NCBI GenBank assembly: GCA_030704615.1
Contig: CM060734.1
Location: forward strand, 18,414,001 to 18,478,000
DNA: 64,000 nt
DNA from: Takakia lepidozioides
Lineage: Eukaryota; Plantae; Bryophyta
Reading direction: 5' to 3'
The translations under genes were made by a program, and so were the position numbers. Shown here one piece after another: positions 14,661 to 44,760 of this stretch. Under the pieces are notes generated by a model. That model had not been told where the DNA came from, did not search any database, and saw only the letters and a program-made list of their open reading frames with translations. How positions within the stretch are numbered: position 1 is the stretch's first letter; the number at the start of each line of letters is the position of its first letter.

Positions 14661-15035
14661 ATGACGAGGCGTCGTTTGTTGGAGAACACAGGGCCAAGGC
14701 AGCAGGTGAATGCGGAGACTGATTCACAAGAGCAGACCGAGACTGAGGCAGCGGCTGTGACACAGTCGGCGATAACAGTGCGCGTTGGAAACCAGCCTGT
14801 GGATGCAGAGATGACTCGCAGGGAAACTGAAGGAGGTGGAAGTACGAGGAACGCTGAACCGGGAGAAGGTCCAGAAACCCTAGAGCAGACAGAAATTCCA
14901 GCAGATGTGAGAGGGAAGAGGAAAGCTGCAGAAGGGGATCCAATTTCAAAACCTAAGAAGGCGCCAGTAAGTTTTCTCTAACTTACATTTCATTGTTGAA
15001 GATCTGCGTAGAGATTGAGTGGAATGTCCCAGAAA

Positions 15036-20919: not shown

Positions 20920-21280
20920 GAATCCATCTCACAAACCTCCCTCATTCTTGTCATATCCATTGTGCTTTCATCTACAGTGTATTCATGCGTGCTCCATTCA
21001 TGAATGTTTTCCTTTGTTCAACATCCATTATACATTCATCCTCTGTACTCTTTAATCCACCCCACAAACCTACCACACTCATGTCATGTACGTTGTGTAT
21101 TCGTCTAAAGTTTTAGTCATGCATCTTCCTGTCATGAATGTTTTTCATTGCTCAACATCCATTATACATTCATCCATTTGACTTTTATCCATCTCTCATT
21201 CATCCATCTACATTCATTTTTCACACTCATCCATCTGTTTATCATCCAACTGTACATTCATCTATCCTTTATTCATCTGT
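20920..21280. repeat. About 135-bp direct repeat x2 and CATT/CATC-rich low-complexity tract near the right end of element A
   Basis: CATGAATGTTTT..TCAACATCCATTATACATTCATCC occurs twice. Confidence 0.65.
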
Positions 21281-21508
21281 TGCTTTCAGGTGGGAATGAC
21301 CACTGCCTTTTATTATGTCGTCCAGCTTGTTTCCGCGGTAAAGGGTGCCAATCCGCGGGAATACACTCCACTTCTTCCTGGGCGCGTGGTGACGCGGTCT
21401 TCAAGTGTGATGATGTGGAGTGAGCCCCACGATGTGGCATTGGTGCAAGGTGACGTGGCGTGAGCGCAGTTGCGCTCACGTGACCAGGCTCACGCCGAGG
21501 CATCCCTG

Positions 21509-22570: not shown

Positions 22571-22929
22571 TGGAGGCGGTACATATTAAAATATGCAAGC
22601 CCCCAAGGCCAGATTTTGTTTGTCTGTTCTTGTGAAACACACGTCAGCAAATGTGCCCCCAATCACGGGTGCAATCAATGCGCAGTGGTTTATGGAGTCG
22701 TTGAGTTGACTACATATTGACTTTAATGAATAAATATGTTTATTCCATTAATCGAATTCGGAATGTAAATTTCTAGTTGCATGTGCAGTAATTAGAACAA
22801 CTTGTATTTTCCGTTTTTTAAAATTTTATGTATTTACATAATTAATTAAATAGCCGCGATTATTGCTACGACTCCGAAGTCATTGACCCAACTTCTATCC
22901 GCCGTCTGAAATGCCCCCGGGGGCCTTCA

Positions 22930-23307
22930 TTATCTGTTTCGACTCTCTAGTAGTCCCGTGTACTGCCAAGTGGTTCCCAGAGTGGTTGGCGGACACCCAG
23001 TCGATTCGGAAAAGACACGAATGCTTCTAGTGAAACTTATTGGTATTGGGCATGTTGGAAAGAGAGTTGGTATGGAGAGGAGGGAAAGGGGGAGATGGAT
23101 TGAGGGGAGGATTATTCGGAGCAGCATGAGATCTTTTCTTTTTGCTTAGAGGTGAGTTAACCCCCAACCGGCCGCAATTGAAGCAAGCTGAAGAGGAAGT
23201 GTTCTTAATCAGTCTAATGGTATAGTAATTGCCTTCTTTGTCAATAGGTAATCTAACGTAATCTGGGAGAATAGCCTCATTTGGCATCATAAGAACCATT
23301 TTTGGAC
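22930..23307 (-). mobile_element. 3' part of an L1-type ORF1 split by element B
   Basis: MVLMMPNEAILPDYVRLPIDKEGNYYTIRL..CFNCGRLG directly continues ..LHDNGCPK at 43825 and above. Confidence 0.8.
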
Positions 23308-23460
23308 GAGCGACGCTACCGCGTGAGTGGTGAGCGCACGCTCACGCGGGGCTGACGTGGCGTGAGCCCACGCTCACGCCACGTCAGCATGAGCGGATGC
23401 CACGACACATGGAAAGGGTACCTATTCCCGTGGGACCATACCGTGGGGAGATGATGTGGA

Positions 23461-23670
23461 GCCCAACCGTTCTGGCCCACCCATAAATGTTGTTTGAGGT
23501 GTTTCTAAAATGGCGTGCTTCGAAGCACACTGTTTTGGCCTACCCATAAAGGCTCGAATGAGGTGATTCTAAAGTGACGTGCTTCGAAGCATACCGTTTG
23601 GGCAAACCCAAAAAGGCTCTTTTGAGGTGTTTCTAAGGTGGCGTGCTTCGAAGCACATTGTTTTGGCTGA
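23461..23670. repeat. 64-bp tandem repeat x3, each with palindrome GTGCTTCGAAGCA(C/T)
   Basis: Palindrome at 23515, 23579 and 23643. Confidence 0.85.
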
Positions 23671-25299
23671 AGCTATCAACCTCCACCCTAGCCACCATAA
23701 ACACAAAAAATTAAACTAGAGGGTTTCTTATCTTTGATCCCAATCATGAAGCTGTCCCAGCCTATCTGCTCAAATACTTGCCAAGAGAAGGACTGCCCTT
23801 GATTAGAATCACATGCATGCCCTACAATTCATTGAAAAACACTGAATTCGGGACCCCATCAAAGGGTGTGTGGCGCCGCACACTGCTTGACGGGGTCCCG
23901 AATTCGGAGTTTTTCCATAGGCAGAAAGGGTGTGCGGCGCCGCACACCCGTAGCTTCGCATTGCTTAAGTTTGGCTTCCGGGCGATCGCTTGGCTTTCTG
24001 AGCCTTATATGACACGTTCTGCTTTCACTGTCATCGGTGTGTGTGCCTCCATGGTGTAATCAGGGGGTTATTTTTTCCCCACAATAATTCCAAATAAAGT
24101 TCACCATAAGTTTTATACCATTGGATTTGTATGCAATGTATTTTTTAGCTATGGCTCTTAGAAGGTCATCATATAAAGTGGTTCATCATAAAAAGTATAG
24201 TAAGACATAATAAAAGTGAAAATAATATGTATGAGTTGCCACCCCAGGGTTTTAGTCTGAAAAGTTGGGAGCATGATTATTGTATGGTGTATCTAGTATC
24301 TACTTACAGCCTGGCAGCTATCTCACAAATTAGTTTTAGCAAGATCTTCTATTCTACATTTTCTATAAGTGAAAATCAGGTGCTAATATGAGTTTGACTT
24401 TTTCCTTTTTCTCGTGTTTTTAGCAAACACGGGACAGAGGGCCCTGGAATGCATCAAAAAAGGGCTAGTTGCTTTCACAACACAAGGTCAGGGACAATAT
24501 TGCGGTAAGGGCACCTTCACCTTTAGCACATTTCAGCCTGTTTTGTCTTATCATAATCATTCCACAACCAAAAAACGTTGTCACATTTTACAGTTCACCA
24601 TATCTGCGCGAGGTAATGAAATTCAATGTGGATGAGAAAGCAGCCTGCCTTGCATTGTTCACATAGAAGGGATAATGGATTTTTTTTATTTTTTTATTTT
24701 TTTAGAAGGCCCCAGAGAGGCCGATTTTTATTTTCAAGATCTTTGAGGAAAAAATAACCTCAATACAAACAGCCATGAAGGTAGGGAAGGGGGCTCCGCC
24801 CCGTGACCATGAGTCCAAAAAGCCCCAACATATAAAACTAGGGTTACTTCAAGGGTTTCCCCTCCTACGCTTGGAGGGTTCGAAGGAAAAGCTAGGTCTT
24901 AGATCTGCCTCGTCTGGAGCTTCGACGGTGTCTCCAGTTGGAGATAATCAACACGGTGGGAGTATTTTTTTTATTTTCAGAATCCTGCAAAGTATTGGTA
25001 TGGTTTTTGGAGATAATCATCTTCGGCTCTTCTGCACATGCGATGATGCTATGTGCCAGAGGCAGCCCAGCGCGACTGAAAGAGGTTATAAATTGTCAAT
25101 TTATAGTTTACAGACTTTAAATTAAGATGGCATCTCAGATATTTATGTCTGTCGTACATAAATGCATCAAGGCCCCCCGCTTTTTCGATGGCTCCCCCCG
25201 GCATCCCCTTCAGCAAGTTCAAGGAAGCCTCCACTTCTCGAGGCCCCAGCAGCTCGTCTTGGCACATCAGGCCCAATCGCGAATCTGCAGCTCTTCCGA

Positions 25300-27295
25300 T
25301 TAATTTGTAAGGGCGCCCCCTCCCCCCTTCTCATTCAACCTCTTTCCCCCCCCCCCCCCTCCCCCTTTTTTTTCCCCCCCTCCAAACAAACTATTATCAG
25401 ATTCCCAGACTGGATTCTTCCATCATGGGGGCCCCTCCTTCTCCTACCCTGGTTGAAGAATGGACTGAAGAAACGTTACTGCGCTTGACTATCCTCTGAT
25501 TTCCATGGACATTCCGGACTTGCATTTGAGAGTGAAGTCCATGGAAGAGCATGGCATTTTGATTCATTTTCTTGGAAGAAAGGTAGACAGGGCCTATGTG
25601 CGAGATTGGGCAACAAGACACTTGGGAGGGCCAGGGGAGCTCAGGCAGCAGTTCTGCCACTCAAAAGGTAGAGGTTTTTATTCAATAGTCTTTGAACCTC
25701 TGAAGTTGCTGCTCAAGCTTTATCATTCAATCCTCATACCAAAGGTTTCAATATCAATATCTTTCCTTGGTCATCCAAGATGGGAAACAAAAATGGGAAA
25801 CTATGGGGACCCCGAATCGTATTTGTTCCCTTCATTCCAGATCAATATCTGGTGAATTTGCCAGATATTGCCAATCATTTTGGCTCCTACCTAGGTTGTC
25901 TTTCTGTTTTTGATCCTCAAATGTGCACTCGGAACCTTCGCCAGGATCCAGCCTGGAAGTCAGCCACTATTGCATCTTGCCTCCATGACACAGGCTGTGC
26001 TAAGTTTGTCCTAATGATGCCAAATGAGGCTATCCTGCCAGAGTTTGTTAGGCTTCCTATTGATGACAAAGGGAACTACTTTACCATCAGACTCATAGTT
26101 TTAACTGCGACCAGCTCGGCCACATCAAAGCTAACTGCCCTACAGGGAAAAAAAAAACGCTCTCCGGCCCTCCAATCCTCCAGTGAACACCACCTTCCAT
26201 CGACACTCCAATCTCATATGCCGGACTCCCGTATGCTCCACATTCCGAGAGCATCAGCTGAGACCAATCTGCATCTATCTGAGGGGCCATCCTCAGCTCC
26301 TGAGGCAGCTCACGCTCATCAAGATCCCCTGTAATTCAGACCCAACAACGCTATAGCATAAATCCACAAATCAATGGATCCTATGCAGGTTGAGGTTGGT
26401 TCTTATCAGCAACGAACTTCATTCAGCAGCACTGGCAAGAAGCAAAACACAGTTAGATCCTCGCCTCCATAATTGTAGTTGTCCATTCCTAGTCTGGTAT
26501 CCAACATTCCTTCACCCAAGGTTATCAGTGGGATTGCCAGTAACTCTGTTTTTGAGCTAGGGTATGTCTGAGGACTTGTTCCTCATTCCCAAACCTGGAT
26601 CTGAAAGGCTGCTCTGCTCTGGAGATAAATGACGCCCCAAAGGCTTCATGTGTCACACCCCTCATCTTCAGGAAAGATAACCCCTCTTTGCTGATTTCGT
26701 CGGATGACCTGAAACTTGTGGAGTCTCTCTGGATCACCACAACAGATGTCATGAATTTAATTCGAACTTGCTCACCAACTTGTGGCCCAGAGATTATGTT
26801 CAAATTGAAGATCCAGAAGTTTTTCCAGACTTCTCTTCCTCGCTACTTCCTGGCATCCTCTACTAAAATATCTTAGTTTGGATGTAGTACGAATCCATGA
26901 AACTCCGGAAAAAAGTGTTGTATTTGTTGCGTATCCGTGGCTTGGCAAATTTGAGAAGTTCAGGTAAAAGGTCAAAGTACCCTGCGAGCATTTAAGGGTT
27001 AAGCCTACTCTTGGAAAATCCCCTCACCCCAAGCAGCACACCTTTAGGCACAATTTAAAAAAAAAAACAATTACCAAGATATGTCTTTCTCAAAGCAGGA
27101 GTAGTACAGATAGTCTTTTTTTGGTTGTTTCCTTGGCATGTTTGGTGCGTTCTCTTTGTCGGTGTTCAAGGTTGTTTAGGACTCAGTTCCTGGTTCATTT
27201 TGGTCTCCGGATCATTTCCGCTTTGTAAGTCTTTTTTTTTTCCGCCTTCTTAATGCATTTCAGGGCTCCGTCCCTTTTAAAAGAAAAAATCAAAG
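25300..27295 (+). mobile_element. Degenerate L1-type element with ORF1 (DUF4283-like) and A-rich 3' end, no RT seen
   Basis: GILIHFLGRKVDRAYVRDWA..RGFYSIVF..GPRIVFVPFIPDQYLVNLPDIANHFGSYLG is homologous to the ORF1 at 43825-44700. Boundaries approximate. Confidence 0.55.
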
Positions 27296-30200
27296 AGAAA
27301 TAATAATAAATCCCAAGTGTTCAGTAAGATGGTCAAAATTTGGTGAAGACCACATTTACAAAGCCCATTTGAGGTGTGAGAAAGGTCAGCAGCCTTGCAA
27401 GATTTACCCTAGTAGGTTGACCACATCTTGTCTGATGCGCACATCCACATGAAGTATTGATATAAATGCTGCAGAAATATCCTAACCCTAGAATCTTGAA
27501 TGTTGTAAAGTACACCCTCCATAGCCAGTAATTTTTGGAGCCTCACTCTTCAACCTTTGCTCATACTAGTTGTGGTGATGTAAGTGTCAAATATGATTAC
27601 GTCTATCAACTCAAAACCCTGGAGATGATGTGTCAGTTGGCAACTATGCTCATCAAACAAGCAGACTTGCCAAAGGAAAATTTAAACTATTGTTACTTTA
27701 GCAGCATGTCCTCCGTTGCAAATTTCACATCATCAATTGTATAATAAACAAGCTTCTTAAGAGCCTCGACAATTTGATTTGTTGTTCTATCTAGTGTTAG
27801 ATGTTGCTTAGAGATGCTATTGTAATTTGGTAGAGATCTGCTGCAACATTTAGAGTCACTAAGAATTAGTAACAAAGTCCTAGAGTAATGTAGGTGTTAG
27901 TCCCCTCACCAAGTAGGGGGGCGGACAAGGGGGAATGATCTCATGTGAGAGATGTCAAATGGGGTAGAATCCCACTTTCATAAGCAAGCTTGTAGGCTAA
28001 CATGGATGGGGAAGGTATGTGGGAAGGGATTAGCATGGTCAAGTTGAAAGTTGGCAGTGGCAAGCACACTACTTTTGTCCCCTTGCAAAACTCACCCAAA
28101 ATTGAAACATATAACCCCCCTTGTTTGATAAGTGCCAACATGAGGGTCAAACGTTTTTTCCAAATTGAGTATTTTTCCTTAACATTATGCTAGAACCGGC
28201 AGAGATGGTGTGGGGGAGCAGATTTATGACTAATCTACTTTCATCCCGTCACTCAAATACATATATTGTCGTAATTTATATTTATTATTGAAAGGGCCCA
28301 AAAATGGGCCACACCTTCAACAATGGCATTTTGCAGGATTTACCCCGAATGTTGTAATGAGCAAGATAACTCATGGATAGATTTAGTCAAAGAGAGGCAT
28401 TCATGAGGGGACGATGACGTTGGGGTGGGACCCCTCTATGGTGATAGAGATGTGAAGGCTCATTTCATCATGGTGCTTTTATTACCTTATTCATCCATCC
28501 TAACGGACACGTTCATCATTAGTATTTTTTCGGCTTTATACCGTTGGATACTGTTACATATCATGACTATGCAGGGTTAATCCTAGTATGTTGGCTCGAT
28601 CCTAGCCGTTTACTCATTCCATGGCCTAGATGCGGCGCCCCTACAGTGGGCCTATCACGCCTCACCACGCGGCAAGCGGGCTCAACCCTAGGTCTGATGT
28701 ACAAGCCCGGGCTGACCTCGGGTTGGAGGTCTTTTGATAAAAGAGTGTTATGAAAGCAGGGTTAGGGGGAATTTTAGCAAAAAATGATTGGCTGTATGAA
28801 TGGTTCATAATCATGACTTAAACATTGCGACTGTATGGATTAGATGCATTTCTTTTGACAACGTCATTGACTTGTAAAACTTTTGAATATGTTGCATGCA
28901 TTTTTTTCCATAGTTTCATTGATTCCGGTTGCGGTTTAGGGTTTGGGTTTAGGGTAGATATATTCGCTAAAAATAAGTAGCTTGTCCCCTGCGGCCTCAC
29001 ACAAGCCCACCAGATCGAGGACCCACCGTAGTTTCACGCTCTCTCTGATGTTGATGTCACTATTCAACCTCGGATCGTCCTGCGTCCTTCAGCGATTCTT
29101 AGCTTCTTTTTCCAAAAATGGGTGAACATAAATTGCCGCATCTCGGTTCTGCAGACAGTCCTTCTTTTAGTTTTTTTTCTGACAAATCAAGCAAATGTTG
29201 CAGTGTAAGGGATGGGATGGACCATAAAGGTTTTAAATCTGGAATGACTGACAAGGCCATTTTATCCTCGGAAATAGGCACACACCGCAGAAATACGTCC
29301 TGTAACTTCAAAAATTACACATGACATAGCGTGAGCCTTGCTGGGCTCCCAGGTTGGGCTCATGTTCTAGCACGCCCCCTGCCTCTGCTGAGCCCCTTGT
29401 CGTTGAGCCAAGCACTGACCCTCAGAGTCTTGTTGTTAGACTGTTGTCTCCTGTTCACAATGATTATGACAACTTTTTGCTGCTGAGGCTTGGACTATCT
29501 TGATCCTAGACAGTGTGAGCAAGAGTTTGAGAGAGAGAGTGAGAGATCTCAGGAGTTTGATGCTTCCTTGTATGACCTACTTTCCATGTCTGATCGTTTC
29601 TGGTTTGACAAGGTAGAATTGGCGGTTGTTTTTCATGCTTCTTACCTCACCAAGTATCTGCATGAATCGGTTCTTACTCATCCTAATTCTGATCTTGTCC
29701 TAGTAGCAGAGCAGGCTCGTTGCTTAACTTGGCAAGTTGTTGATTTGCGGAACTCCGCACGATTGTCTCAGGGAGTTCTCAAGACTCAATTTCTACATCA
29801 TAGGGCCTTGTCTTGGCAGGAGTTGGGCCTTCATCTTCCACTGTCAGCAGAACGAACTCAGCAGAACCGGATTATTTCCAACTTGATGGAGGATTTTTGG
29901 TTGTCCTTAGTACTCAGAGGCTCGGGTGTTTTGATCCTACGGGTGCTTTGATTTCACATCAGTCGTGTTGGGTCATACCGACTTCCTCATATCTAATTGA
30001 CGGGCTTTTGGTTGATAGTTTACTTGGACATGCTTCTGATGTAATCATTTTGTCGGGTCCCCGCTTTGAAGACCAGAGAGTTATCGTCCGCGGGTTCTTG
30101 AGACACTCGACCGCCTACCTAATCACTCTATGTTGTCATGGACGTGGGAAGAAGCTCCCACTATCTGCATTGTTTTTTGGACCAAGACCTGGGAATGGTT

Positions 30201-30757
30201 GGTCGGCCTCTCTGATCATGAGTTGGATTCCCACGACGATCTGTGAGTCATTTCTTGTTCTGCTTGGTCTCCCGGACTTGTGTGCTGGCCTTGGAGGCGA
30301 GACAGTCTCCACACGCTGCTTGTGTGAAGGTAATTACTGGTGATCGTGTTTGTTATTGTCTATCTTGTTTATGCTTCATAATAGTTCTAGGCCGTGGGTT
30401 CATTCTGGCAAAGAGCGACGTATTGACATGGATTCTATTATCGAAATTCCTTCTAATTTGGTCGTGATGGATAGTTCAGGTGATCCCGGTACCCCTTCTG
30501 ACAGAGAGAATCTACGCCGTGAGCAGATGTGGTGTAAGCGTGAGCAGATTTGAAGCGTGAGTAAAATCAAGAAAGAGAACCCATAATCGTGGAGAAGATG
30601 GGCCTATTACCGTGGAGGGAAAGAATTTCGAAATGGTGAATTTGAGAACGTGACAGGGACCAAAGATAGCACCGTGGAAATGGAAATGGGATAGTCCTTT
30701 AGGATTGTTGGCTTTATCCAGTAAAGACTAAGGCAAGTTGAATCTGTATTTCCCATG

Positions 30758-32285
30758 CAACGACGCAATGGCGTGAGCGTGAGGTCATCAGGTTGATATG
30801 GCGACAAATGCTGACGTGACATTGCGCCGTCTTCTGCCACATCAGCATGAACATGCGCCGCCTATAACCTAGGATGGTTCTATGACCGTGAGATTAATGT
30901 AGGGAATCCTTGGCTGAATACAATCAAAGACTACCATGAGGCCTACAATTGTAGCATCCAACATTGTGCAATTATAATTGTTTGTTTCACTTTTATAATT
31001 AGAAGGACGAGAAAATATCCTCACAAAGTGTGCGCCATAGAGGCTTGCCACAGGAAGACCTTGCTCCCTCCCCAAATAACAATGAAAGTTGGGATCATCT
31101 TCAAAAGATGATTGTAGTGCATATCGACAAGAAAACATGTAGACTTCGAAAGGTGCAATGATGCATGTGTTTTTAAAAGTTGTCACTCAGAGCTCATTCA
31201 GTATAGTTGGAAGCATAATGGAGGGATAAGGGATGCCATATCATTGCATCGCCGACGATGTTGCAAATGAATTGATTTGAATTGAATTTCCATGACAATG
31301 TTGCAAATTGCACATTTCATAGCATGGTCGTCCACATACCATTGCATACTCACAATCCATACAAAACACATTTCAGATTGCAGATTCCAGATTGCATATT
31401 TACCACATTCCAGATAGACGAAGTGATAGTTGATGCTACCTATGTGTTGTATCCCGCTGCAATAGAGTATCGACCTCGTTGAAACTCAGAGTGGCCTGGT
31501 GAACGAAGTTGTCACGCTTGGGATCGCAAACCACCATCTTCAAGAATATGAAATACAAATGTTTGCAGGGTATGAATTTTTCTCTCTTGCCCAAACTAGT
31601 TGATAGCATATTCACAAAATCAGGACAGATGTAATTGGGGAAATTGGAAACTGTGATGTCGTAGGCCCTGTCATGAACAGCAGATGTCGAAGTGATCATT
31701 GTGTACACCCGACCATACCCTGGATCAGGCACTTCCGTGGTGCTTGCAACACGAGCTTGGAGCATTCTTGCGGACTCTACTTTGCCGAAGTGTTCTGCAG
31801 TTGGAGGGAAACGCCGAACGAGCTTTCCATCTCGTTTGGTTGGCCACAAGTGAGGATTTGTCGGAGGGACCCGACAAGACGCGGAAGTAGAAGCAGACGC
31901 ATGCAGTTGGGGTTGTCTCGCAAGGGAAAAGTCTGCCTCCTCCAGCATTGCAATCTCCTGACTTGTGAGATGTGTTCCTACCTTGACGGACCAAACGGTT
32001 GGAGGAGCTGGCTTCATCACCACGGAAGGTCGCACAGTTCCATGCACACATCTACCACAATCGTCTGCGTAGAACCAGAACTTGTGGTTTTTGGCTTCTG
32101 GTTGGCCGTATGGACACATCAAACCCGTGAAAGTCGGAACAGGAGTCCGGGCACCACCTCTGGATATAGATGAAGTGCATTTTTTGAAATTAGTTGCCCT
32201 GATCGCTGCACATTTTACACGAGACCCTGCACTTGTGCATTCTATGTGCCAAACGTGGTCGGGGCATGCGGACTCCAGCACATCA
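30758..32285 (-). mobile_element. Truncated copy of element A (left TIR plus SWIM-containing transposase C-terminus) nested in element B
   Basis: Starts CAACGACGCAATGGCGTGAGCG and is colinear with 9761-11250. ORF 31436-32305 includes YDITV..CPDF..CKHLYFIF. Confidence 0.9.
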
Positions 32286-32289
32286 CAGA

Positions 32290-33420
32290 GCAGACTTCCG
32301 CTCAAGTTTTTGCAGCAGTTCTAAATCCCGCCAAGGATGATGGTCCGCATTTTCCTCATCTGGGTCTGAATCTGGTGACCACTCCCCAAACTGGGCAGCT
32401 CCATGCTCCACCGCAACAGGACTTCCTGCAGAATAGAACAAGGCTCAGCATCTCTTCCAAGGGCCACAAAAGCCTGGATCCAATGCAAGAGGATTTCAGG
32501 GCACATCGGCTGGGGAAGGACTCAACAGGTAAAGGAAAAGCTCGGATATGGGAGGAATCTGCTACTATCCAGTTGACCGTGCCTACCATCCATCCATGCC
32601 CCAAAGTAATTTCAGATATTGCCTGCAACTCCATGTTTGCGAACACTTGCCTCCACTTGGCCACATTTGCAAGTCTTGACCTCAAGGGATGTTCAGCCTT
32701 GGAGACTATTGAAGCCCCCAAAGCTTCCTGTGTGACACGCTCATCTTCAGGAAAGGTAATCCACCAGCCATCCTCATCACTTCAGATGACCTTGAATGCG
32801 TGGAATCTCTATGGATCACTACTGCTGACATCAAACAATTCATGACATCATGTCCTCCAGGCAGTAACCCAGAATTCATTTTCAAACAAAAAATACAAGA
32901 TTATTTCCCGGCATCTTTGCCCCACTACTTTCTTGCTCCCTAGGCTCGAGTTTCATGGGGTGCTTACCTGGAAGACCACCCTGGTCTTAGTTGTAAGCCA
33001 TCAACTCAAGTGCTTGCCCTTATGGAAGAGGCTGAAATTTATTCCACACCTCAGCCCATGACAGCAATGTGGACCTACGAGGAGTGGCTATCAAACCCTC
33101 ATGGCAGTCATAAGTTGCAGATACGGAACCAGGATACACTGGTTAATGGCTTTCAAATGTTGGGGGCCTTTCTCGAATCGGAAGTGGAGGAGGATAACCA
33201 CAAAATGGAGCTCCAAAGGACTAGAGATTTAATGGAAAAAAGGCATCGGAGAGCTCCTCAACCTCCTCGGACTCCCTAGTGGACTCTTCAGCGGCAGGGG
33301 CTAAGGCTACTAAGGAGGATCTTGTGACCACTGTGAGCTCCATGCAGATTTCCCCGCCAACCATCATTGACACCACGCAGTTCGATACCATGGGGAGCCC
33401 GCCACATTTGGTTTTCCCAC
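32290..33420 (+). mobile_element. Degenerate retroelement-like fragment related to 26500-26960 and 42060-42500
   Basis: Shared translated block (KIQDYF/KIQKFF..FL..SW..YLEDHPGL..LALMEE/D.E.Y.). Confidence 0.45.
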
Positions 33421-33752
33421 TTATCTCTCAACTCTCTCCTCCTAAACGGGTTCTCTCCTCACCCTCTCCTTGTTTCTTTTTCCAGATTCTATCCAGGGAC
33501 AAACAAAACAAAACAAACGTCTCGCTTCATATATTGATATGCGATAAAGAGCGTCGCAAGCGGGTCTTGGGGCAGCTGTCGACGAGGCGCAGAGCAGCCG
33601 CGGAATCCTGGACCCACCTCTCTCCTTCATCGTTTGTTGTTATCCAAAGTCGTTATGGACAGACAGTTGCCCTGCTTCTTCTGTAAATCTCTTTCTTCGT
33701 CGTCGAGCTTGTGTTTCAAATCAACCGACCAGTAGTGGTTTTGAGAACTCCA

Positions 33753-34883
33753 ATGTTTGGAAAGTGTCTTGAAGCAAATCGGCATCACGCCATCAGCCGT
33801 ATGGATTGTTTTCTGATGGCCACAGTCGCTCATCACCGCTCCTTTCTCTGGTCGCTCCGTGTGAAGCTTAACAGGCGTCCCAATTTTGGACCCACGCGCA
33901 GCTATAGATCGGATTTGGCCAGCAATGAATCGCAGATACTTCAGAACTATGAGAGGAGCCTTTTGGATCAGCTGCGTTCGCTTAAGCCCGAGCTTGAGAC
34001 GGGAATATTGAACCTGGCATGGCTAGACAAGGCGTTGTCGGTCCTGACGTCTGCGCATAGCGCTGTGGACAATCTGATGCAAGATTTGGATGCTCCCGGA
34101 ACCATAGAAAAGCAGCTCTGGATTAGTGAGTACCTAGAACATTATAGTGCTAAGCTTTTGGACATATGTAACTCGATCAACGCAGGCATTTCGCAAGTGG
34201 AGCAGCTCCAAATGGCGGTAAAGCTGGTGTTGCTTGTCCTGGATCATAGGCAGTGACAGCTTCGGTGAAGCCCAGCTGCGACGGGCGAGGAAGGCACTCC
34301 AAGATTGTCGATCAAGCTCAGAAACCCAAGAAGATGTAAACACAGGAACAAAATTGCTTCAGATCATGAGTGACAGAGCTGTAGACCCCAAGATTACTAC
34401 CGAGGTTAGCCTGGGAAACGGCTACTTACGTGGGTTTTCTGCTGCGAGAGTGGTCATACCGTTTTTCCTTGGAGCAGTTCTGATCGCGCTTCCGGGGAAT
34501 GGGGGAATGCCTGTGATGAATTTTCGGATTTCGCGACAGTTGGGTGGTCCCCTTTGTTTGAAACATTGCAGGTGAAAGTGAAGGAACAGGCGGGCAGCAA
34601 AAGGAGACATGGCTTAATGGGGCTGCTTTTGGAGCTTGACATACTGCAGGTGCGCTTAAAACGCATTTTCGATATGGTGGAGAATGCTCTTGCTTGCGCC
34701 GAGTTTCCTTTGGGTCCCAAGCAGTCAGAGGAGCTGAAGGCCACCATCAAGCAACTGAAGCAGGAGTCTGAGACTCTGGAGAGCGGGCTGGCTGGTTTGC
34801 AGCATCATACCACAAATCTTTTTCGCACTCTCGTTCAAAGTCGCTCGGCTATGCTCCAGAGTCTCAGCGAGCCCGATATGTAG
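33753..34883 (+). pseudogene. BPS1/ROH1 (DUF793) family gene with two frameshifts (about 34250 and 34545)
   Basis: LNLAWLDKAL..WISEYLEHYSAKLLDICNSINAGISQVEQ..GEAQLRRARKAL..LESGLAGLQHHTTNLFRTLVQSRSAML. Confidence 0.8.
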
Positions 34884-35209
34884 CTCTCTTGATCGGGTCC
34901 AAGGGCGAAAGGCAGACATCCTTGCCAGCTGCAGATATTAGGTCAAAAACTGAGGTGAGAGTATTTGTCTCGGTTGTGGTGCTCTCTCCCTATTTGGAGA
35001 TTCGCTATGTTTGTATAATCTAGGGTTTGGCTTGTACATACTGTAAACTGATAAGTATTTCGGAAACCTACCAATGAGCTCTTCACTCTTGTAAGACAGT
35101 CTGATCAGTGAACATGGTTTTTTAGCCAGTACTTTTGTAAATGGCAGAATGCAGCAGAATGAGCACATCCTGGTTGCTCAAATTGCAGAGTGAGGAATTT
35201 GATTTCTAA

Positions 35210-36260
35210 GGTGTCATTATAAGCGAAATATGTAGAATAATTGTGAGTCTGGAGGATGCTAGAGAAAGAAAACCTTGAAGCACGAAAGGAAGATCAAAGG
35301 AGTGCATTCTCCATAAGCTTGCTCGTTGTTGTTGACAGGAGCTTGTCTGAGAGGGCAGAAACAACAGTAAGGCTACTGGGGCATCCAGGCTCGTCAAAAA
35401 TGCGGACAACAGATTTTCTGTTGTTTGCATGCCCAAGAGTTCCCAGGATGATACCCCATTTTTTCCCATTTTGAGCTTGCTCTTTGTGCATCTCCCATCC
35501 CCTCTTGATTGTATTCCGCCAAAATTGGTACCCTTGCATGCCATATGCCTTCACATTAGGGTCTGTGGGCTTCAAGACCGCACAACCACGTCAACAGGCC
35601 CGAAGATAGAGCTGGAGCTGTGCATGGAAGCATCTCCCCAGGAGACAGGCTGGAATTAGGGTGTGAAGGAAATCGCTCACCATTTGGCCCTTCCCTGCAT
35701 TAATTGCCGTGGAGAGTTGGATTGTTCCAGCCAAAGGTACACTCATCCCTTTCTTGAAATTGTGCCTCATAATTTCGAAGACATCAATCTGTCTGTCCAC
35801 AAGCACATACAGGTAGGGAATTCGACTGGAACAAGGCAGATGTGCCCAGAATGAACCTAAAATTGTTCCCCTAGAGCTTTAAATGAGAAGTCATCGACAC
35901 AGCATGCACCATAGGTCACATCCCCAAGCACAAAACACTCCTCCACACCTGCAAAAGCTTCCAGAATGTAGCAGATTGTGAGGGAGTACATCAAAAAGCC
36001 CTGCGGAAACTGCAGGGCTACCTTCTTTGCCTGAGCATGCTTGACTCTCCACATGGTTTCAAGACTTTCAAGGTTGTAATGGGGGGGAGCACCGCCATAG
36101 TAGCCTCGGGGAGGGGATCATCCAATTTACTCTGAGGGTGTTTGCTGTCGTATGCATCTGCGGGGACCTGATGTTTCTGTGAGGGCTTGAGAGTGGACAA
36201 CCGCGCAGGAATCGTATGCTCCTCAATCTCCCCTTTGCTTTTCCACCCTCCATGAGAGAG
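35210..36260 (-). pseudogene. DPH1: Diphthamide biosynthesis protein 1 pseudogene
   Basis: KKVALQFPQGFLMYSLTI..ECFVLGDVTYGACCVDDF; LAGTIQL; KWGIILGTLG; many frameshifts. Confidence 0.85.
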
Positions 36261-37629
36261 ACTGATCACATATCAATCCGATGGGAGATTGATCCATCTC
36301 ACCTCCAGCTGCGCAATTCCTCACTACGTAGTTACCCTTCTTGCAACGACTGATGACCGCCACCCCAGACGTAAATCCAAACCAAAGCTGAAGTCTGCCC
36401 ATAAGAATCTATGTTCCAGGACTCGGGACCTGGGTTAGCATAAAGTGGAACAAAGGAACTAACAAGAAGAAAGAGACGCATAACGTCAATTGTGTGTATA
36501 AGAAAGCACCGACATTCAGTAGGACCCATTTGTGTGGGATCGCTTTCCGAGCAAACTTACGGATCCATCATGTTTGAAAATGTCTTTCGGCTAAAATTTC
36601 TCCAAGTCTTCTTGTTCAATACGATAGCTGAAGTTAATGCTTTTGAGACCCATGAATCTTCAACTCCACTCCGGATCTTCCTGAATCTTGTAACTGAGAG
36701 TGTGACAACACAATCAATTGATGTAGTCACCCGATTCCTCCTCCTAACTAGGTACCCCCTAACTCCGGCTACAGTTTTCAAACTTGAAGCAAGTAAGCTA
36801 CTGTATTCTGTTTCAACGACTTGGCGTATTGGCAATCTCCTTTGAGCCGGAAGCAACCACTGCCCAACACGGAAGAGCTATGGAAAGCTCAAGCTGCTGG
36901 CCAGGAGTCCGAGCTTGAAGGGAGGGTTGGTGTAATTGGGAAAGGCGAGAAGAAAACTATTCTTCGGGTGCGAAAGGGTATTACGCAAGCGTTTACACTG
37001 CAATCTGAATCACTCTAATGTCTCCCATGCATGTCATTCGAAAGAAGAGCGCCTTTGCAAGGGTATTCTTGAAGGGAGAGAGGGAGAAAGATTATTTGGG
37101 GATTGCGACGTGCAATTTTTCAGTATAGAGACAGATACTTCGCGGGAATGGTGATGTACGCTTGTGGGCATAGCGATCTTCTGTTGCTTGTGCATGGTCT
37201 ACCTAATCCTTGAAAGAGAGAATTACTGTACATATAATTACAGCATCTGTGCAATAAGTATACACAGAGTATCACGGCTCAAGGATCCAACTGCCTGGTA
37301 AGAGACTGCTGATTCGAACGCAGATTTGATAATGGATATATCTTGTAATGTCGAACTTTGGCCGAAGAGGAAGCTATACGGGACTCGCCTATGCGTACAT
37401 CTGCACAAGAAGCGCCTCAGTCTACAGGACTAGCTTGTAACGTGTATGCTATTGTTCTCTAGAGAGAAGGAGGGTTCAAATGTGCATTCGAAAGCTCGTG
37501 CGTTTTGGAGAAGAAGCTGATGACAATCATGTTTGATGTGATTACGAAAAAGAAAGAAAACGCTAGGAGAGAAGGGGAGAGAGATCGGGGGGAGAGAGAA
37601 GGTTGAACACCCTAAACCAGTGATATTAA

Positions 37630-39096
37630 TGCAGGTGTGCAGGATGATACGTGAGAGGACGATTGGGCAGCGACGGCCGCCTTCAGGACCCAACCGCAAT
37701 CGGGACAAATGTGAGGCCTTCTGCGCCTCTCTGGCAAGTAAGCTGGACAATCTCGAACAATCTCTGCAGCCAAAATTGCTATCGCTTGCTTGGGTTTCGC
37801 TCGCCATCGAGTTTATGCGGTCGACCTACTCGGACATGATTCACCTGGTTGAGGAGTTAGGAGAGTCGACTTCTGGGGACTTCAAAGGGTCGGGGGACTT
37901 CTGGTTGGAGGATTACATGACCGAGAGCATGAAGCTTCTAGACATTTGCAACATATTGAAGCCCGCAATTTCTCAATTCGAACACTACCAGATGTGTGTG
38001 CAGCTCGTTCTGCAGGTTTCTCAAAGGGCCGCAGAAGACCACCTTGCGGGAACCTACACCTGCACTACCAGCAGGAACTTGAGTGGCGCGTTCCAAAGTT
38101 CTGATGAAGAGCTGCAAAAATTACTGGATACTGCACCCGCGCAGACAAAATCTCTCATTGTCCTCTCGGAGAGGCTCGTCTCGGGCAATGTTAACTCCTG
38201 GACAAAAGGCTTCAACAACGTAACCCGGTTTACCAGTGTCTCCATTGGCGATTTGAAGTTCTCACCTGAGCAAGTGGGATGCAGTACACCAGCAGCTTCA
38301 ATTGATCCTGCAAAGGCGAATGGGAATGGCAAGAAGGTTGATGGATTAGTTATAGTCATGGAGGCCACCAGAGATGCCATTGACTTTGTCTCGAGGATGC
38401 TTGTCTGGGTACTCACATCTTCGTCTAAAGATTTCCCTCGTATCGTCAAATGGGAGCATTCGTGGTCGCCAGCTTTCCGGTTATTGCAAGACAAACTATT
38501 TGAACAGTTCGGTGAGAGGAGTTGGGAGCCAAGGCAGACCTCCATTTTGGCATTTCAGGAAATTAGCCTTGTCCAAGGTTGTGCCTCAGACCTGAAGTTG
38601 AAGATTGGAGAGCTGGTAAGCAAGCCTGCAGATGAGCACTCGGTCGCGGGCATCCAAGATTTGATCCAGAAACTGACAGAGCATGTCAGTGAGCTGCAGG
38701 CAAGTCTTCAAATATGAGAAAATATATGAACGCACTTCAAAGTGCCTCTCAGATTGCCCCACACATTTCCAGACCATCCTCACTAATCATTCTTTGCAAA
38801 ATTCTTGAATACACAGGGAGATGGAGCCTTTGATGTACCACGATACTGTTCCAGCTGCCAGGTCAGGAGAGGGAACTAGAATTCAGGCGTTTCAAAATTC
38901 AATTTCTCGTGCAGATCAAGTCATTTTATTCTTATGTTCCAGATCAGTGATTCCTTGATTTGTGATCTTGCAGGGTGGCTTGGAGAGAATATCAAGTCAA
39001 GTCAATCACTTATTTGACGACCTTGTTAGGACGAGAAAGAAGCTGCTGGATAAAGCTCAACGGTCCTCCGCCATCCACAGAGCCTACACCTTGTAG
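37630..39096 (+). CDS. BPS1-like (DUF793) protein, apparently intact; exon 1 to 38699, GC-AG intron, exon 2 38974-39096
   Basis: LLSLAWVSLAIEF..WLEDYMTESMKLLDICNILKPAISQFE; spliced C-terminus GGLERISSQVNHLFDDLVRTRKKLLD matches the family C-terminal helix. Start codon uncertain (37630 or 37644). Confidence 0.82.
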
Positions 39097-39759
39097 AAAC
39101 CAAGCATTTAACTGCAATCCATTGTGTACAGAGAAACTCTAGTTGCACTCCAGTAGAAGACAACGACGTCAACTTTCATGATTCAAAAAGTTCACCGTCA
39201 TCAGCACAGTCCCCTCCCATGTGCAAAAGCTGTGTGTTCTAGGAGCAGTAAAATTGAATATGCAGGAGTAAATGCTGCAATAACAGCGCAGCCCACTACC
39301 AAAACTCTCGAGAAAAGTATACCAACAACGGCTAGAATGACACTAAAATATGGTAGCTTGGCTGAGACTTCAGCAAATGATCTGATGGCCTTGAAAGCTT
39401 TGCAGAAAGCTTCCTTTTGGTGTTAGTATCACTAGTATTTTTGGACACCATTGGCAATGAAATACAGGATAGGGAGCTTTTGGACATTCCCTTGTGTTTC
39501 CATTGCATTCCAAACGTTCCCAGGTTCCAAAAGTTCTTCATCCCCCTCCATCTTTGATTCCTTGAGTGGGTTGCATAAACAGATATGCTCTTACACTCTG
39601 TGCTGAAAGTTTGACATGATGATTGATCATGCTTATACCAAGTTTGGCTCTACAGCCAAAACTCAAGTAGCCCACAATGGAAGCTAGACTTCTCTGCTGT
39701 TGCCCAGAGCTTTCTACACTACAACTAGCATGCATGTGCACCTATTGAGAACCTCTAGA

Positions 39760-41945
39760 GAATGTACCCAGAAGACGTCGTTCGCCATAGCCTTGTGGCC
39801 ATTGACCCCATGCCCAGTTGGAGTGGAACACAAAGCGACAGAAACTACCTTTGTCAGGAGCTGACGCTGGTAGTATGTACTTAACTTGGAACACACAATT
39901 GATCCGAGTTTTCCAAATATCCTCTAGAAATCCCTTTACACAAGCATCAACCTACTGTGTGTGGTGTGCCCAATAACTAGGCCCCAAAGGGCTGGGCTTT
40001 TGGCTAAGCCTCAAGACTTTCAAAGTTGATAAACAGAGGTACAGGCACAATTCCCATGATAGATTTTAAGACGGCGTCTCTCTGGTGAGAGAACCCCGGA
40101 CAATGGATCAGAAAATGAATATTGTCTTCAGGTTGCCCATACAACTGGCATTTGCAATGCCCCTTCCCTCTCTGCTTCTGTTTGCGTAGGCTTTTCGCCC
40201 TGAGTTTAAATTTCAGTCTAGTGCTGAGAGTGGGTCAACCCTTGAGGTCATCCATGATGGCCTCCCCCATGTCACAGACTGGAAACAAGTTCAGGGAAGT
40301 TTTCTGCCTGACTCCATTTTCATCAGACAATTTCCTGGCAACAGACATGGCTTTGCACACTATAGCCTCCAAGTCAGATTTATCCAGTAGGGTCAAGACT
40401 TACAGACTTAGAACTAGATCCTTGAGAATCTCTTCTACCCTCTTCCACCAGGACTTAGCCTGTTTGAGCCTATTTGACACGGCGATCCTGCTTCCAAGAT
40501 ACAGAGTCAGTTAACTTTGGATATCTGGTATTAGTCATAAGGCACAAATCCCTTAATGGATTTGAAGTGGGCGTCCCTCTGGTGAGAGTACCCAGGACAA
40601 TGAATCAGGAAATGAATATTGTCTTCAGGTTGCCCACACAACGGGCATTTGCAATCCCGTTTCCTCTCTGCTTCTGTTTGCTGTTCAAAAGAGAGATAGA
40701 GAGAGAGAATGTACCTGGTAAACAGAGGTACAGGCACAATTCCCTTGATGGATTCTAAGACAGCCTCTCTCTGGTGAGGGAACTTACCCCGGACAATGAA
40801 TCGGAAAATGAATATTGTCTTCATGTTGCCCACACAACGGGCAATTGCAATCCCCCTTTCCTCTCTGCTTCTGTTTGCTATTCAAAGGTAGGCTTCCCGC
40901 CCTGAGTTTAAGTTTCAGTCTAGTGCCGAGAGTGGGTAGACCCTTGAGGTCATCCATGATGGCCTCCCCCATGTCACAGACTGGAAGTTCAGGGAAGTTT
41001 TCTGCCTAACTCCATTTTCATCAGACAATTTCCTGGCAACAGACATGGCTTTGCATACTACGGCCTCTAAGTCAGATTTATCCAGTAGGGTCAAGACTTA
41101 CGGACTTAGATTCAGATCCTTGAGAATCTCTTCTACCCTCTTCCGCCAGGACTTGGACTGTTTGACAGGGGGATCCTGCTTCCAAGATATAGAGTCAATT
41201 AACTTAGGATATCTGGTATTAGTCATATGATGCAGCTGACCACACCATCTGACCTTGAATCCATCTGGAAAAATTTAGTGAGACCCAACGCTCTGCGCTT
41301 GCCAGATAGAACAACTTTCTGATATGTGCATCCCAATTACAGTTGGAGGAAAACTCACCGCCAAGGTATGTGTAGGAAGGGAGGACCGGAATCTCTTGGC
41401 TTCCCCACTGCCACTTCAGATTGCCTCCTCCCTCCCCTCGGTTGTTGAATGCCACCACTGCACATTTACTGACGTTAGCCTTTAGCCCCGAAGGTCAAAG
41501 TATCTCTTCGCCAATCAACTTCTGAGGATTGGATGGAGTCTCCCCTATGCCTGCGAAGTCATCCGCAAACATAAGGGCTGGTATGGTGGCATCACCCACC
41601 CTTGACCCAAATCCCTCACTTTCCACATCCTCGAGGAGTTGCTCGTTGAAACATTGAAGAGCAGAGGAGAGAGGGTGCATCCTTGAGCTACACCTTGGTC
41701 TCTGTCAAAGAAGTTAGACTTCTGTCCATTAACAGTGACACAGCTTTTGGTGTGACCATACAAGTTATGGACCACTCTCCACATCTTTCCCTTGATCCCA
41801 GATGACCAGAGTCAGAGCCATAGACCAAGTCTCCACACAGTGTCATAAGCCTTTTTGACATCCAAGAAAAAGAAAAAAGTGGGTTGCACTTCTTTTTCCT
41901 TCCCTGGATAATCTGGCTTAAGAGTGAAGATAGGATCCTGTAGAG
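39760..41945 (-). mobile_element. Cluster of fragmented LINE copies (same family as 56030-58998)
   Basis: [28 protein letters not shown] and CPLCG motifs; at least three overlapping 3' fragments. Confidence 0.9.
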
Positions 41946-43824
41946 AAATGCCAAAAGCTGAAAATAATTTATGTTGTTCAGTACAAAAGATCTTGTGGCC
42001 CATTCACACATAATTGTAACAGCTGAACTCGAATCTAGGCAAAGACGAGCTGGAATCGCTCTGGATTACTTCACTGGATGTCAAGCACTTCATTTCAACC
42101 TGCCCCAACCAACACCCCCCCCCCCCCATGATATGATTAGATAAGATCCAAGATTTCTTCTAGCACAACATGCCGCAATTTCTGCTGTCGGAAAACTCAA
42201 GGATCTCCTGGGCTACATACCTAGAACACCATCCAGGTTTAAGCAGCAAGCCAAACTCATATCTTGGCTCTCATGGAGGATGTGGAAGTATACAATTCCC
42301 CTCCACAGAAATCTTGGTGGATCTCAAAAAATGTTGTTGACAGTCTTTGGGTTGATACTCCAGCTAGAATACGTGCTAAAGATACAATTATCAATGGCTT
42401 TGCCCTTCTTCAAAGATACATACATTTCCTCGTTGATGAGGAGAACTACAGAGATGACTTGCAAATAACCAGGGATCATCTCAACGGCATCAAACAATCG
42501 GTCTTTGGATCATCATCCTCCAGTGACTCAACAAACGTGGCCCCAATGTTGGTGGCGTTTCCAGTCCCTGTTGTGGCAGCACCGGGGGAGCTTCAACTTG
42601 TTGTGCCTGATGTATCCAGGGGGGTGGCTTGGAATCACCCAATCCACCAGGAGTTCCCGGTAGTCAATCCAGCAGTTGGAAACACATCAAGCATATCAAG
42701 AACACAAGAATGTCGTCCAAGCCCCACTTTTGCTACACAGTTTCTACACTACTTACTTGGGGTTTACTGCTTTCTGCTCTCTCAATAGTTACTTCTCTCT
42801 ACCCCTAAGTCTCCATGCGCTTCCTCTAATTTCCTCGGGAGTATAGGCCCCTCTTGCTCCTCCTTTCTTCTCTTTGATGGGGTCCCCGAATTCGGAGTTT
42901 TTCCATAGGCAGTGCACACCATTTCTGCCCATTCAAAAACAACTTATTCGGGACCCCATCAAACAGTGTGCACACCCTTTCTGCCCGCTGAAAAACTCCG
43001 AATTCGGGACAATGAAACGGTTGTGTGTCATGCTTTATCTCAAAGCATTTTGTTCTTCGAATTGTGAAGATCAATACATCATGAGTGGTTGGGATTGCTT
43101 AGATTGCACAAATTTTGGTTCCAATTACTGGCCATTGTCAGGGACCCATACACAAAGAGCATATGTCATGGCACTTGTGTGAAATCATGAACTCCTCTCG
43201 CTTTCAATGACACATGTAGTTTGCTTCAAGAATAGTTCTTTGCCACAGACCAGTTGTGGATGTCTTCTAAACCTGCAAATCACTGAAGTCAGCATAGTCT
43301 TTGCACTTTGGAGCCTCAAAATCTTTGCAAGACTAGCGGGGTTTATAAGACTCTCCAGCTCTCATGAATTGGCCTCCAGTACTATAAATGTGGTCTACAC
43401 TTTTTCAAGCAGAGCCCCATCCAATTGCAGTTCTTGTGATGTTCCTTTTCCCTCGCAAAATATTTCATTTCTGACTTGCCTTGAGGAAGGGATTATGTGA
43501 TGCGAACTTCGATATAAGAACATGTTGCCAAACATGCACTGCTCCATAACACCAGCAAAGAAAACCCGCAAATAAGACCATCCACAATATCACCTTCCTC
43601 AAATGGCTAATCTTCATTGTGCCCATTGTCAATATCGCAGCAATCGGTTGGATCCTTGGCAACTGTGCTCTTCATATTACCTTCTCGCTGGCATGCCTGC
43701 AGGGACATCCTACCCGCGGTTATGAGTGTCATCCGTGAAATTACATACAATATTTTTTTGCAAAAAACCTGGGCCGCACCGCTCGCGTGAGCACAGGCTC
43801 ACCGCTTACGGTCTAGCATCCCTG

Positions 43825-44760
43825 TTTTTGGACACCCATTATCATGGAGCTTGGTGGCCATTTTCCATGCTGGATCTTTCCTAATGCTGTATGTGCTCAT
43901 GAATGGGTCAAAACCCCCCAGACACCCAAGATATGACCCAAAATGATTTGCAATATCAGGCAAATTGACCAAATATTGATCAGGAATGAAGGGTAGAGAT
44001 ACTATCCTAGGACCCCAGAGCTTCCCATTTTTGTTCCCCAATTTAGAAGACCATGGGAAGAGGTTGAAGTTGAAGCCCTTAAGATGTGGGTTGAACAATA
44101 GTGCTCGGGAGGCTGCATGCTAGGACTCAAAGACTATAGAAAAGAAGCCTCTAGCGTGGCAGAAGTGTTGCTTAAGCTCTCCTTGACCTCCCAAGTCCCT
44201 AATGGCCCAGTCCCTGACGTATGCCCGACTGACCTTTCTCCCAGTGAAGTGCACCAGGATGCCTGATTCTTCTATGGTTGAGATTCTACTGTTAAGACTT
44301 CGAATGTCCATATCGATCAGCGGGTAGTCTCGGCTCATTGAGTCCTGCACTTCCATAGATTCCAGAGGCAGTGCTTCCTCTGTTTTCAGACCTGAGGGTG
44401 AGCCTTCTCCAGAATCATTGAGAAGAGGATCCATCACTGAAGTTGTTGAGTGAGAGGGCCTGAAGGGCCGAGGAGTTGCCAGAGCACGAGGGGTAGGTAA
44501 ACCAGGATGGAATCCTCGGGGTAGAGATTGAACCTGGTGCGTTGGTAAGGAAGGATGATAGCCTTGGGGAAGAGATTGAGCATGGTGCGCAAGGAAGAAG
44601 CCAGTGTCCAAGCTTGGTTGGGGCCTAGGAGCTTGCGAAGGTCGTGGTGGGCCTTGATTGCACTGTCCATTAGTGCGATGGGAGAATTCACTGGGCCCCA
44701 TGGCTAAGGGAAGAGATCTAGAGGTGGAAGGAAGACAAAGTGCTGCCCGAGATCCAACTA
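43825..44760 (-). mobile_element. 5' part of an L1-type ORF1 split by element B
   Basis: GILVHFTGRKVSRAYVRDWA..ARGFFSIVF..GPRIVSLPFIPDQYLVNLPDIANHFG..LHDNGCPK. Confidence 0.8.

Follow-up and report, generated by a model that had tools for sequence, protein, structure and literature searches.

Results

A 20.5-kb insertion flanked by a 9-bp repeat

The window analysed here, a 64-kb stretch of DNA from the moss Takakia lepidozioides, contains two related transposable elements, A and B. Element B, the subject of this report, occupies positions 23308-43824 (20,517 bases, 20.5 kb), holds host-derived genes between its ends and sits as a single piece in an older repeat that resembles an ORF1, that is, a first open reading frame (ORF). 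As the initial annotation had claimed, it is bounded by a perfect 9-bp repeat, TTTTTGGAC, at 23299-23307 and 43825-43833, which we read as its target site duplication (TSD). The following features delimit the insertion.

22901-23298, minus strand: downstream half of the interrupted target ORF (ORF1-like), without a match in Pfam
23299-23307, no strand: left copy of the TSD, TTTTTGGAC
25460-26259, plus strand (opposite orientation to the target ORF): uninterrupted paralog of the ORF1-like target, lying inside element B and used as the "empty site" reference
43825-43833, no strand: right copy of the TSD, TTTTTGGAC
43834-44800, minus strand: upstream half of the interrupted target ORF (ORF1-like), without a match in Pfam

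Taken alone, the repeat is weaker evidence than it appears, because the 9-mer is over-represented in the window, with 6 occurrences where dinucleotide shuffles predict 0.9 and Markov models of order 2-6 predict 1.3-2.1. The TSD is convincing because of its position, since its two copies adjoin a left end and a right end, each recognised independently through homology to element A. We rebuilt the empty site in a script by removing 23308-43824 together with one copy of TTTTTGGAC, so that a single TSD copy was kept. The flanks rejoin in frame, reading ...LHDNGCPKMVLMMPNEAIL..., and the minus-strand frame of the rejoined target is open throughout (...KLHDNGCPKMVLMMPNEAILPDYVRLPIDKEGNYY...). Against the paralog at 25460-26259, the alignment runs without a gap across the join, with 70% identity at the DNA level and 56% amino acid identity over 207 residues. 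This gapless, in-frame alignment identifies the 20,517 bases as an insertion relative to the ancestral sequence of the family, with the target present once. The earlier description of the target as an L1 ORF1 rejoined in frame therefore holds for the restored frame, which is colinear with the paralog, but the "L1" label had been given by eye and the Pfam search of the interrupted ORF returned no match, so we call it ORF1-like. Exact-protein look-ups of the junction ORFs found no record.

It is very improbable that no transposition took place here and that the structure reflects a chance match of the 9-mer, an assembly join or some other rearrangement. The over-representation of the 9-mer and the fact that the junctions come from the assembly alone would agree with such an origin, but the repeat lies exactly at two independently defined family ends and the target is restored in frame and colinear with its paralog. 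Furthermore, among the Logan contigs that we compared with 33050-38949 at a likeness of at least 80% (two runs of the source sample and two probable RNA runs, X5 and X6, of other samples), those of the source sample reproduce 33512-38949 with zero differences. Element B is thus a real, large element, either Pack-MULE-like (MULE, Mutator-like element) or composite Mutator-like.

An intact 13-nt copy of the reconstituted empty target, A-TTTTTGGAC-ACC, also lies at 39437-39449 on the plus strand, between the gene BPS1b and a reverse transcriptase fragment, both described below. Markov models predict about 0.006 such copies (post-hoc p near 0.02), and wider target homology is absent around it. The idea that the repeated 9-mer stems from a third target-ORF copy at 39.4 kb is unsupported (z 0.7).

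Ends and arms of element B

The two ends of the element and their subterminal arms comprise the following features.

23308-23400, plus strand: left terminus, homologous to that of element A, with GTGAGC/GCTCAC repeats at 23330-23379
23469-23667, plus strand: 64-bp tandem repeat of 3.1 copies in the left arm
23831-23950, no strand: left-arm palindrome with TCCCGAATTCGGAG as an inverted pair, cognate with the palindromic block of the right arm
42872-43010, no strand: right-arm palindrome, an inverted pair of TCCCGAATTCGGAG
43700-43824, plus strand: right terminus, ending in GCATCCCTG like element A, with GTGAGC/GCTCAC at 43787-43797 and a CCGCGG block common to the right arm of A

The resemblance of these termini to those of element A, noted earlier by inspection, is borne out at both ends: the left ends share 63 nt at 86%, and within the window GCATCCCTG is confined to two places, the right end of A (21500-21508) and that of B. 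The left-end signature CGACGC.A..GCGTGAG occurs three times in the window, at 9764, 23311 and 30761, and clusters of GTGAGC/GCTCAC are limited to element ends, namely the left and right ends of A, the left and right ends of B, and a small cluster at 30519-30540. Each comparison of ends was scored against 500 shuffled controls.

B left versus reversed B right: z 4.1, score reached by 0 of 500 shuffles
A left versus reversed A right: z 5.9, score reached by 0 of 500 shuffles
B left versus A left: z 7.8, score reached by 0 of 500 shuffles
B right versus A right: z 4.4, score reached by 1 of 500 shuffles

The terminal inverted repeat (TIR) of element B is imperfect and 41 nt long; an ungapped count of the left end against the reverse-complemented right end gives 29 matches in 41 positions. 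The TIRs of classical MULEs, at 100-200 bp, are much longer, and MULEs of a non-TIR type exist as well.

Further inward, the 14-mer TCCCGAATTCGGAG forms one pair in the left arm (23840/23896) and another in the right arm (42884/42996); elsewhere in the window it has just one match, with two mismatches, at 16608 in element A. The arm blocks 23831-23950 and 42872-43010 match each other at 83-90% in inverted orientation, and the subterminal motif previously reported near both ends is indeed there, as 25 nt at 23900 and 42888 that form part of the palindromic blocks. The private palindromes and the 83-90% match of the blocks indicate that the two arms are cognate and count against a chimera of unrelated ends. 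Scans of element B for Rfam families, tRNAs and tandem repeats returned nothing but the 64-bp repeat. At 24066-24759, a pair of 33-nt inverted repeats (76%) surrounds about 690 bp and may represent a small nested foldback element.

Element A and assignment to the Mutator superfamily

Element A (9760-21508) has an 8-bp TSD, CCCTGCAA, and interrupts a PLS-type PPR gene. The product of its minus-strand gene is a diverged transposase that has a SWIM zinc finger and a WRKY/GCM-like region at its N terminus; a second gene is present besides. Each exon of BPS1b, DPH1 and the transposase served as a separate query. For the minus-strand gene of A, Pfam searches at E 0.01 gave no match; the last transposase exon matches SWIM at E 0.0025, below the cutoff. 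A Logan contig, L001 (SRR327433, 1-9055), is 74% identical to A. Its transposase and second gene are likewise arranged head to head, their open frames are longer than in A, and the SWIM match reaches 21.2 bits against a cutoff of 19.6. Atlas features of a 209-aa exon of A point weakly to FAR1, GCM and ZSWIM proteins (0.89-0.91), and the middle exons of the gene display, by eye, a MULE-like D...D...E pattern.

Elements A and B and the contig L001 are alike in the left signature CGACGC.A..GCGTGAG, the right-terminal GCATCCCTG, the GTGAGC arrays and a TSD of 8-9 bp, whereas the transposase gene and the second gene of A are both missing from B, which in turn has a palindromic subterminal motif of its own. 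Element B likely belongs to the Mutator superfamily, judging from sequence features: the length of the TSD (9 bp in B and 8 bp in A, where about 9 bp, 8-11, is expected of Mutator elements), the SWIM finger, the weak FAR1/GCM/ZSWIM leads and the general architecture.

Directly to the left of A, within the PPR gene, lies an array of 197-bp units (8282-9638); each unit consists of 113 + 84 nt and is not a multiple of three.

Host-derived genes carried by the element

Three host-derived genes or gene pieces lie next to each other in the interior.

33687-35213, plus strand: BPS1a, a BPS1/ROH1-like gene with a broken frame (N part 33687-34253, C part 34410-34880)
35297-36272, minus strand: 5' fragment of DPH1, covering Diphthamide_syn profile positions 1-115 of 302
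37050-39096, plus strand: BPS1b, an intact two-exon gene of about 397 aa (start of the RNA-like contig at 37050; coding sequence 37629-38699 and 38974-39093; stop codon 39094-39096)

The initial annotation had placed whole host genes inside the element, a description that fits BPS1b, which is whole, but neither BPS1a, which is disrupted, nor DPH1, which is a 5' fragment with a frameshift.

BPS1b has an open frame of 391 codons (37542-38714) with its first ATG at 37629, followed by a second exon of 40 codons that runs to 39093 after an acceptor at 38973. The intron between them (38700-38973) has an apparent GC donor (GCAAGT) and an AG acceptor, at the same position as in a Sphagnum homolog. A HMMER search against 1.84 billion representatives returned 73 matches, the best of which is a Sphagnum compactum protein (CAM6050888.1, 402 aa; 45% identity, E 1.5e-61) that aligns over its residues 11-364 to residues 43-388 of BPS1b, with a Physcomitrium patens protein next (37% identity); these matches agree with a moss affinity of the DNA. 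The Sphagnum gene keeps the same exon 2, which is 64% identical over 42 aa. A word-indexed homology search gave no match for BPS1b, and for the Pfam families BPS1 and ROH1-like, BPS1a exceeds the cutoffs and BPS1b narrowly misses them. By its intact ORF and its full-length similarity to family members, BPS1b is an intact gene of the BPS1/ROH1-like family. A comparison of synteny with Sphagnum-type BPS1 loci found nothing in common beyond BPS1 itself, a result that is uninformative at such an evolutionary distance.

The RNA-like contigs, which are uninformative on strand, level and ends, match BPS1b with zero differences over 37050-38694, 38033-38480 and 38527-38700. The splice to exon 2 lies beyond the stretch compared with contigs and is consistent with their ending at 38694-38700. 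For BPS1a, RNA-like contigs cover 34044-35213 unspliced, with one difference: position 34363 is A in the assembly and the DNA contigs and G in both RNA-like runs of other samples. This is probably variation between individuals, but it may also be RNA editing.

The N part (34.4 bits, ROH1-like) and the C part (29.6 bits) of BPS1a lie in the same frame with stops between them, and the middle third of the family is unrecognisable. BPS1a and BPS1b stand in tandem and are 34% identical. Upstream of BPS1a, a 40-bp stretch at 33499-33542 has a summed contig depth of about 11,500-15,000, against about 25-36 beside it, and represents a very high-copy short repeat at which contigs break.

The first exon of the DPH1 fragment matches residues 6-73 of archaeal Dph2, and its frame is shifted at a run of seven C near 36080, between ...LDDPLPEATMAVLPP and HYNLESLETMWRV... 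The 3' end of the RNA-like contig of BPS1a leaves space for no more than about 1 kb of DPH1. Three exon-like blocks, at 35431-35483, 35652-35736 and 35885-36087, have a paralog at about 85%, and the spacers between them differ in length from those on the paralog contigs (228 versus 168 and 167 versus 148), which points to a second DPH1 locus whose introns occupy corresponding positions. RNA-like contigs over these blocks carry the differences of the paralog and hence match the parent, not the copy in the element. By its sequence, the DPH1 piece resembles the product of ordinary duplicative capture, with a parent of about 85% retained. Two smaller units considered at this place were ruled out: a small TIR element around the DPH1 fragment, since inverted repeats were not found, and a nested element ending at 35460 (a TSD-like match of 8/9), since the paralog continues unbroken through this site, which falls within a DPH1 exon block.

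Copy number and parents of the cargo

The DNA contigs of the source sample reproduce 33512-35944 and 35928-38949 with zero differences, at depths of about 25 and 35, which equal the depth of the paralog contigs; the cargo stretch 33512-38949 is therefore single copy. At 80% or more, it has paralogs for the DPH1 exon blocks (about 85%) and for 89 nt of BPS1b (84%), and for nothing else. The donor locus BPS1-DPH1-BPS1 envisaged in the initial annotation did not turn up, there being no donor at 80% identity or more among the source-sample Logan contigs. A Pack-MULE would be expected to have parents for its cargo: DPH1 has one, of about 85%, on other contigs, while neither BPS1a nor BPS1b has one of at least 80% beyond the 89 nt, and for BPS1b this counts against recent duplicative capture.

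These observations bear on whether element B is a classical Pack-MULE that acquired its cargo piece by piece from unlinked loci, through duplicative capture by gap repair and template switching, with the parents kept. The DPH1 fragment behaves as that origin predicts, with its intron positions preserved, a parent of about 85% elsewhere and RNA-like contigs that match the parent, a pattern typical of transduplication (PMC13317346). For the block as a whole, we judge the explanation decidedly unlikely, given that BPS1b is complete (leader, intron and 3' exon) and lacks a parent of at least 80% beyond 89 nt, that BPS1a and BPS1b are tandem paralogs of 34% identity, like a native gene pair, and that the block is contiguous over at least 5.4 kb.

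Transposon material in the interior

Besides the host genes, the interior of element B is a mosaic of several transposon families, with the following recognisable pieces.

26556-26873, plus strand: module X, first half only, coding-like
30757-32320, plus strand: orphan A-type left end with the 3' part of a transposase gene, including the SWIM region
32639-33300, plus strand: module X, full-length copy
39757-41938, minus strand: fragment of a retrotransposon of the non-LTR type (LTR, long terminal repeat), 5'-truncated, with a weak RVT_1 match and an internal duplication
42190-42600, plus strand: module X, second half only

The proposal that part of the length of B comes from other insertions is thus substantiated as other transposon material (the reverse transcriptase fragment, the A-type end fragment and the ORF1-like copy); about 3.6 kb, at 26.9-30.5 kb, is without recognisable content, and the ORFs at 29.5-30.3 kb had no match in Pfam. 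This debris probably entered in part before and in part after the element moved.

The orphan left end at 30757 is identical to the left end of A in its first 23 nt and lacks a stretch of about 97 bp that carries most of A's GCGTGAGC repeats. The fragment as a whole is 88-91% identical to A 9883-11252 and ends at the equivalent of A position 11252. Neither a matching right end nor a TSD for it was found in the window. Directly upstream, 30504-30710 is a weak remnant that resembles a MULE arm, with GTGAGC and then CGTGGAG repeats. A fourth left end at 30504 was ruled out (reversed right arm weak at z 4.2, left arm z 0.6, TSD absent), as was a pairing of the 30757 left end with the right end at 43824, their flanks being ATTTCCCAT and TTTTTGGAC, respectively.

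The orphan end also invites an explanation by accretion, in which a small element, consisting of two arms and little else (perhaps 2-5 kb), inserted first and the host genes arrived later, either within a second gene-carrying MULE (left end at 30757, right end lost) or by ectopic recombination or repair. Such a history would account for the A-type left end directly upstream of the gene block in the same orientation, the weak arm-like remnant at 30504-30710 and the mosaic of transposon families, and nested insertions are common in MULEs (PMC3903597). We nevertheless regard it as unlikely: the right end and TSD of the nested carrier were not found, ATTTCCCAT at 30748 is unpartnered at plausible ends (at 35461, an 8/9 match falls within one of the DPH1 exon blocks), and the sole right end, at 43824, is cognate with the outer left arm of B, not with A.

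The non-LTR fragment belongs to a family that is also present at 25-1478 and 56269-59009, the latter with a 907-aa open frame (stop to stop) at 56269-58989. The three copies of module X are old paralogs with 36-56% amino acid identity, and every search for a homolog, Pfam included, was negative. Their half copies overlap by about 50-75 bp, which, with their age as paralogs, rules out a single unit split by a large insertion. Contigs 82-90% like the middle copy at 33116-33155 and 33229-33306, one of them in an RNA-like run, indicate further copies in the genome.

Surroundings of the element

By eye, and in agreement with the initial annotation, the genes flanking this region are a DRM-like cytosine methyltransferase (3308-4690) upstream and an SNF2/BRM-like gene (50000-63000) downstream. 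The BRM-like gene contains the non-LTR element with the 907-aa open frame, of the same family as the fragment in B.

Discussion

Proposed assembly and movement of element B

We lean towards the view that the cargo was on board when element B moved with its outer ends. The alternative requires a second carrier, whose right end and duplication were not found, and it is for this reason that we place the cargo on board. Element B would then be one non-autonomous Mutator-like DNA transposon that inserted as a unit into the ORF1-like repeat by cut-and-paste transposition, with duplication of the 9-bp target. It has no transposase of its own, just the truncated 3' piece within 30757-32320, as is usual for Pack-MULEs, and would therefore need one in trans. 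An A-type or sister transposase may have bound the GTGAGC/GCTCAC terminal repeats on both arms and moved all that lay between them. At that time, a contiguous host block, comprising BPS1a, the DPH1 fragment and BPS1b with its own 5' leader and intron, would already have been aboard. The block may have been taken as one segment, either through the fusion of neighbouring insertions in the same orientation or between two distant ends, rather than by piecemeal capture; a complete BPS1b beside an old tandem paralog and without a close parent fits a contiguous piece of chromosome caught between two ends.

For Pack-TYPE elements, neighbouring insertions in the same orientation whose inner TIRs are damaged have been described to move as one (Catoni et al. 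2019, as presented by Gisby and Catoni 2022, PMC8903248). The parts of the literature consulted describe this fusion model for CACTA, PIF, hAT and Mariner Pack types (PMC8903248), not for the Mutator superfamily. Element B agrees with the fusion model and with macrotransposons in the presumed use of the outer ends and movement of everything between them, a damaged inner end in the same orientation and a single outer TSD. The inner left end at 30757 has the orientation of the outer left end and has lost its repeat array, as the fusion model predicts for an end skipped by the transposase. Unlike the model, element B has no inner right end that we could find, and its inner left end is of the sister family A. 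Ac/Ds macrotransposons were reportedly described in maize by Huang and Dooner in 2008. Of the earlier proposal that the family moves multi-gene cargo in trans, the ends of the A family, the lack of an own transposase and the host-derived genes are upheld, but "multi-gene" overstates a cargo in which one of three genes is intact. The accompanying macrotransposon idea gains from the extra left end at 30757, which fits it, although the evidence does not discriminate between origins.

Several points weigh against cargo movement as a unit by a Mutator-type transposase. Both junctions are known from the assembly sequence alone, not from reads, and a single copy of element B has been seen, with neither a second insertion nor an empty allele found that would prove cargo mobility. 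The TIR, besides being short, is 71% identical. The internal right end predicted by a simple fusion of two elements was not found in B, where the inner left end is A-type and the right arm B-type. Pfam searches of A and L001 left the MULE domain (PF10551) unmatched. Finally, the RNA nature of X5 and X6 is an automatic guess, though coverage confined to two gene bodies fits RNA.

Relation to known gene-carrying elements

Pack-MULEs have been described from rice, maize and Arabidopsis (Jiang et al. 2004, as cited in PMC13317346; Zhao et al. 2018, PMC5861414) and carry fragments that are mostly non-functional and sometimes expressed (PMC13317346; PMC5861414). Element B shares with them ends of probable Mutator type, the 9-bp TSD, the absence of an own transposase, the host sequence between the arms and the apparent transcription of cargo, and its DPH1 fragment, with the parent kept, is a textbook case. 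It departs from them in its length of 20.5 kb, which is several times the usual size, in a TIR of about 41 nt at 71%, in its moss host and in a cargo that includes a complete two-exon gene with its own leader, without a detectable parent and beside a tandem paralog. The CACTA element Tgm-Express1 (PMC1947982) and Helitrons are likewise large DNA transposons of plants, loaded with several pieces of host genes of which some are transcribed, but they belong to other superfamilies, with other ends and TSDs, and their cargo consists mostly of fragments. Element B is thus unusual in its size, in one intact single-copy gene with exact RNA-like contigs and in its moss host; otherwise, it is a known kind of gene-carrying element.

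Implications

It is possible, though doubtful, that a Mutator-superfamily transposase relocated, without duplicating it, the sole close copy of a conserved, expressed BPS1-like gene by macrotransposition over many kilobases in an early-diverging moss. In that case, a DNA transposon would have carried off a gene and left no copy at the donor site. Which terminal repeats are required by the transposase may be read from the damaged inner left end, a natural experiment, and element B would provide a concrete case on which to test the model of fusion of neighbouring insertions in the Mutator superfamily. What is known of gene capture by DNA transposons in plants is chiefly a shuffling of short fragments; a clean, TSD-bounded element with a complete, transcribed, single-copy gene would show that Mutator-type elements move functional genes, over several kilobases, in bryophytes.

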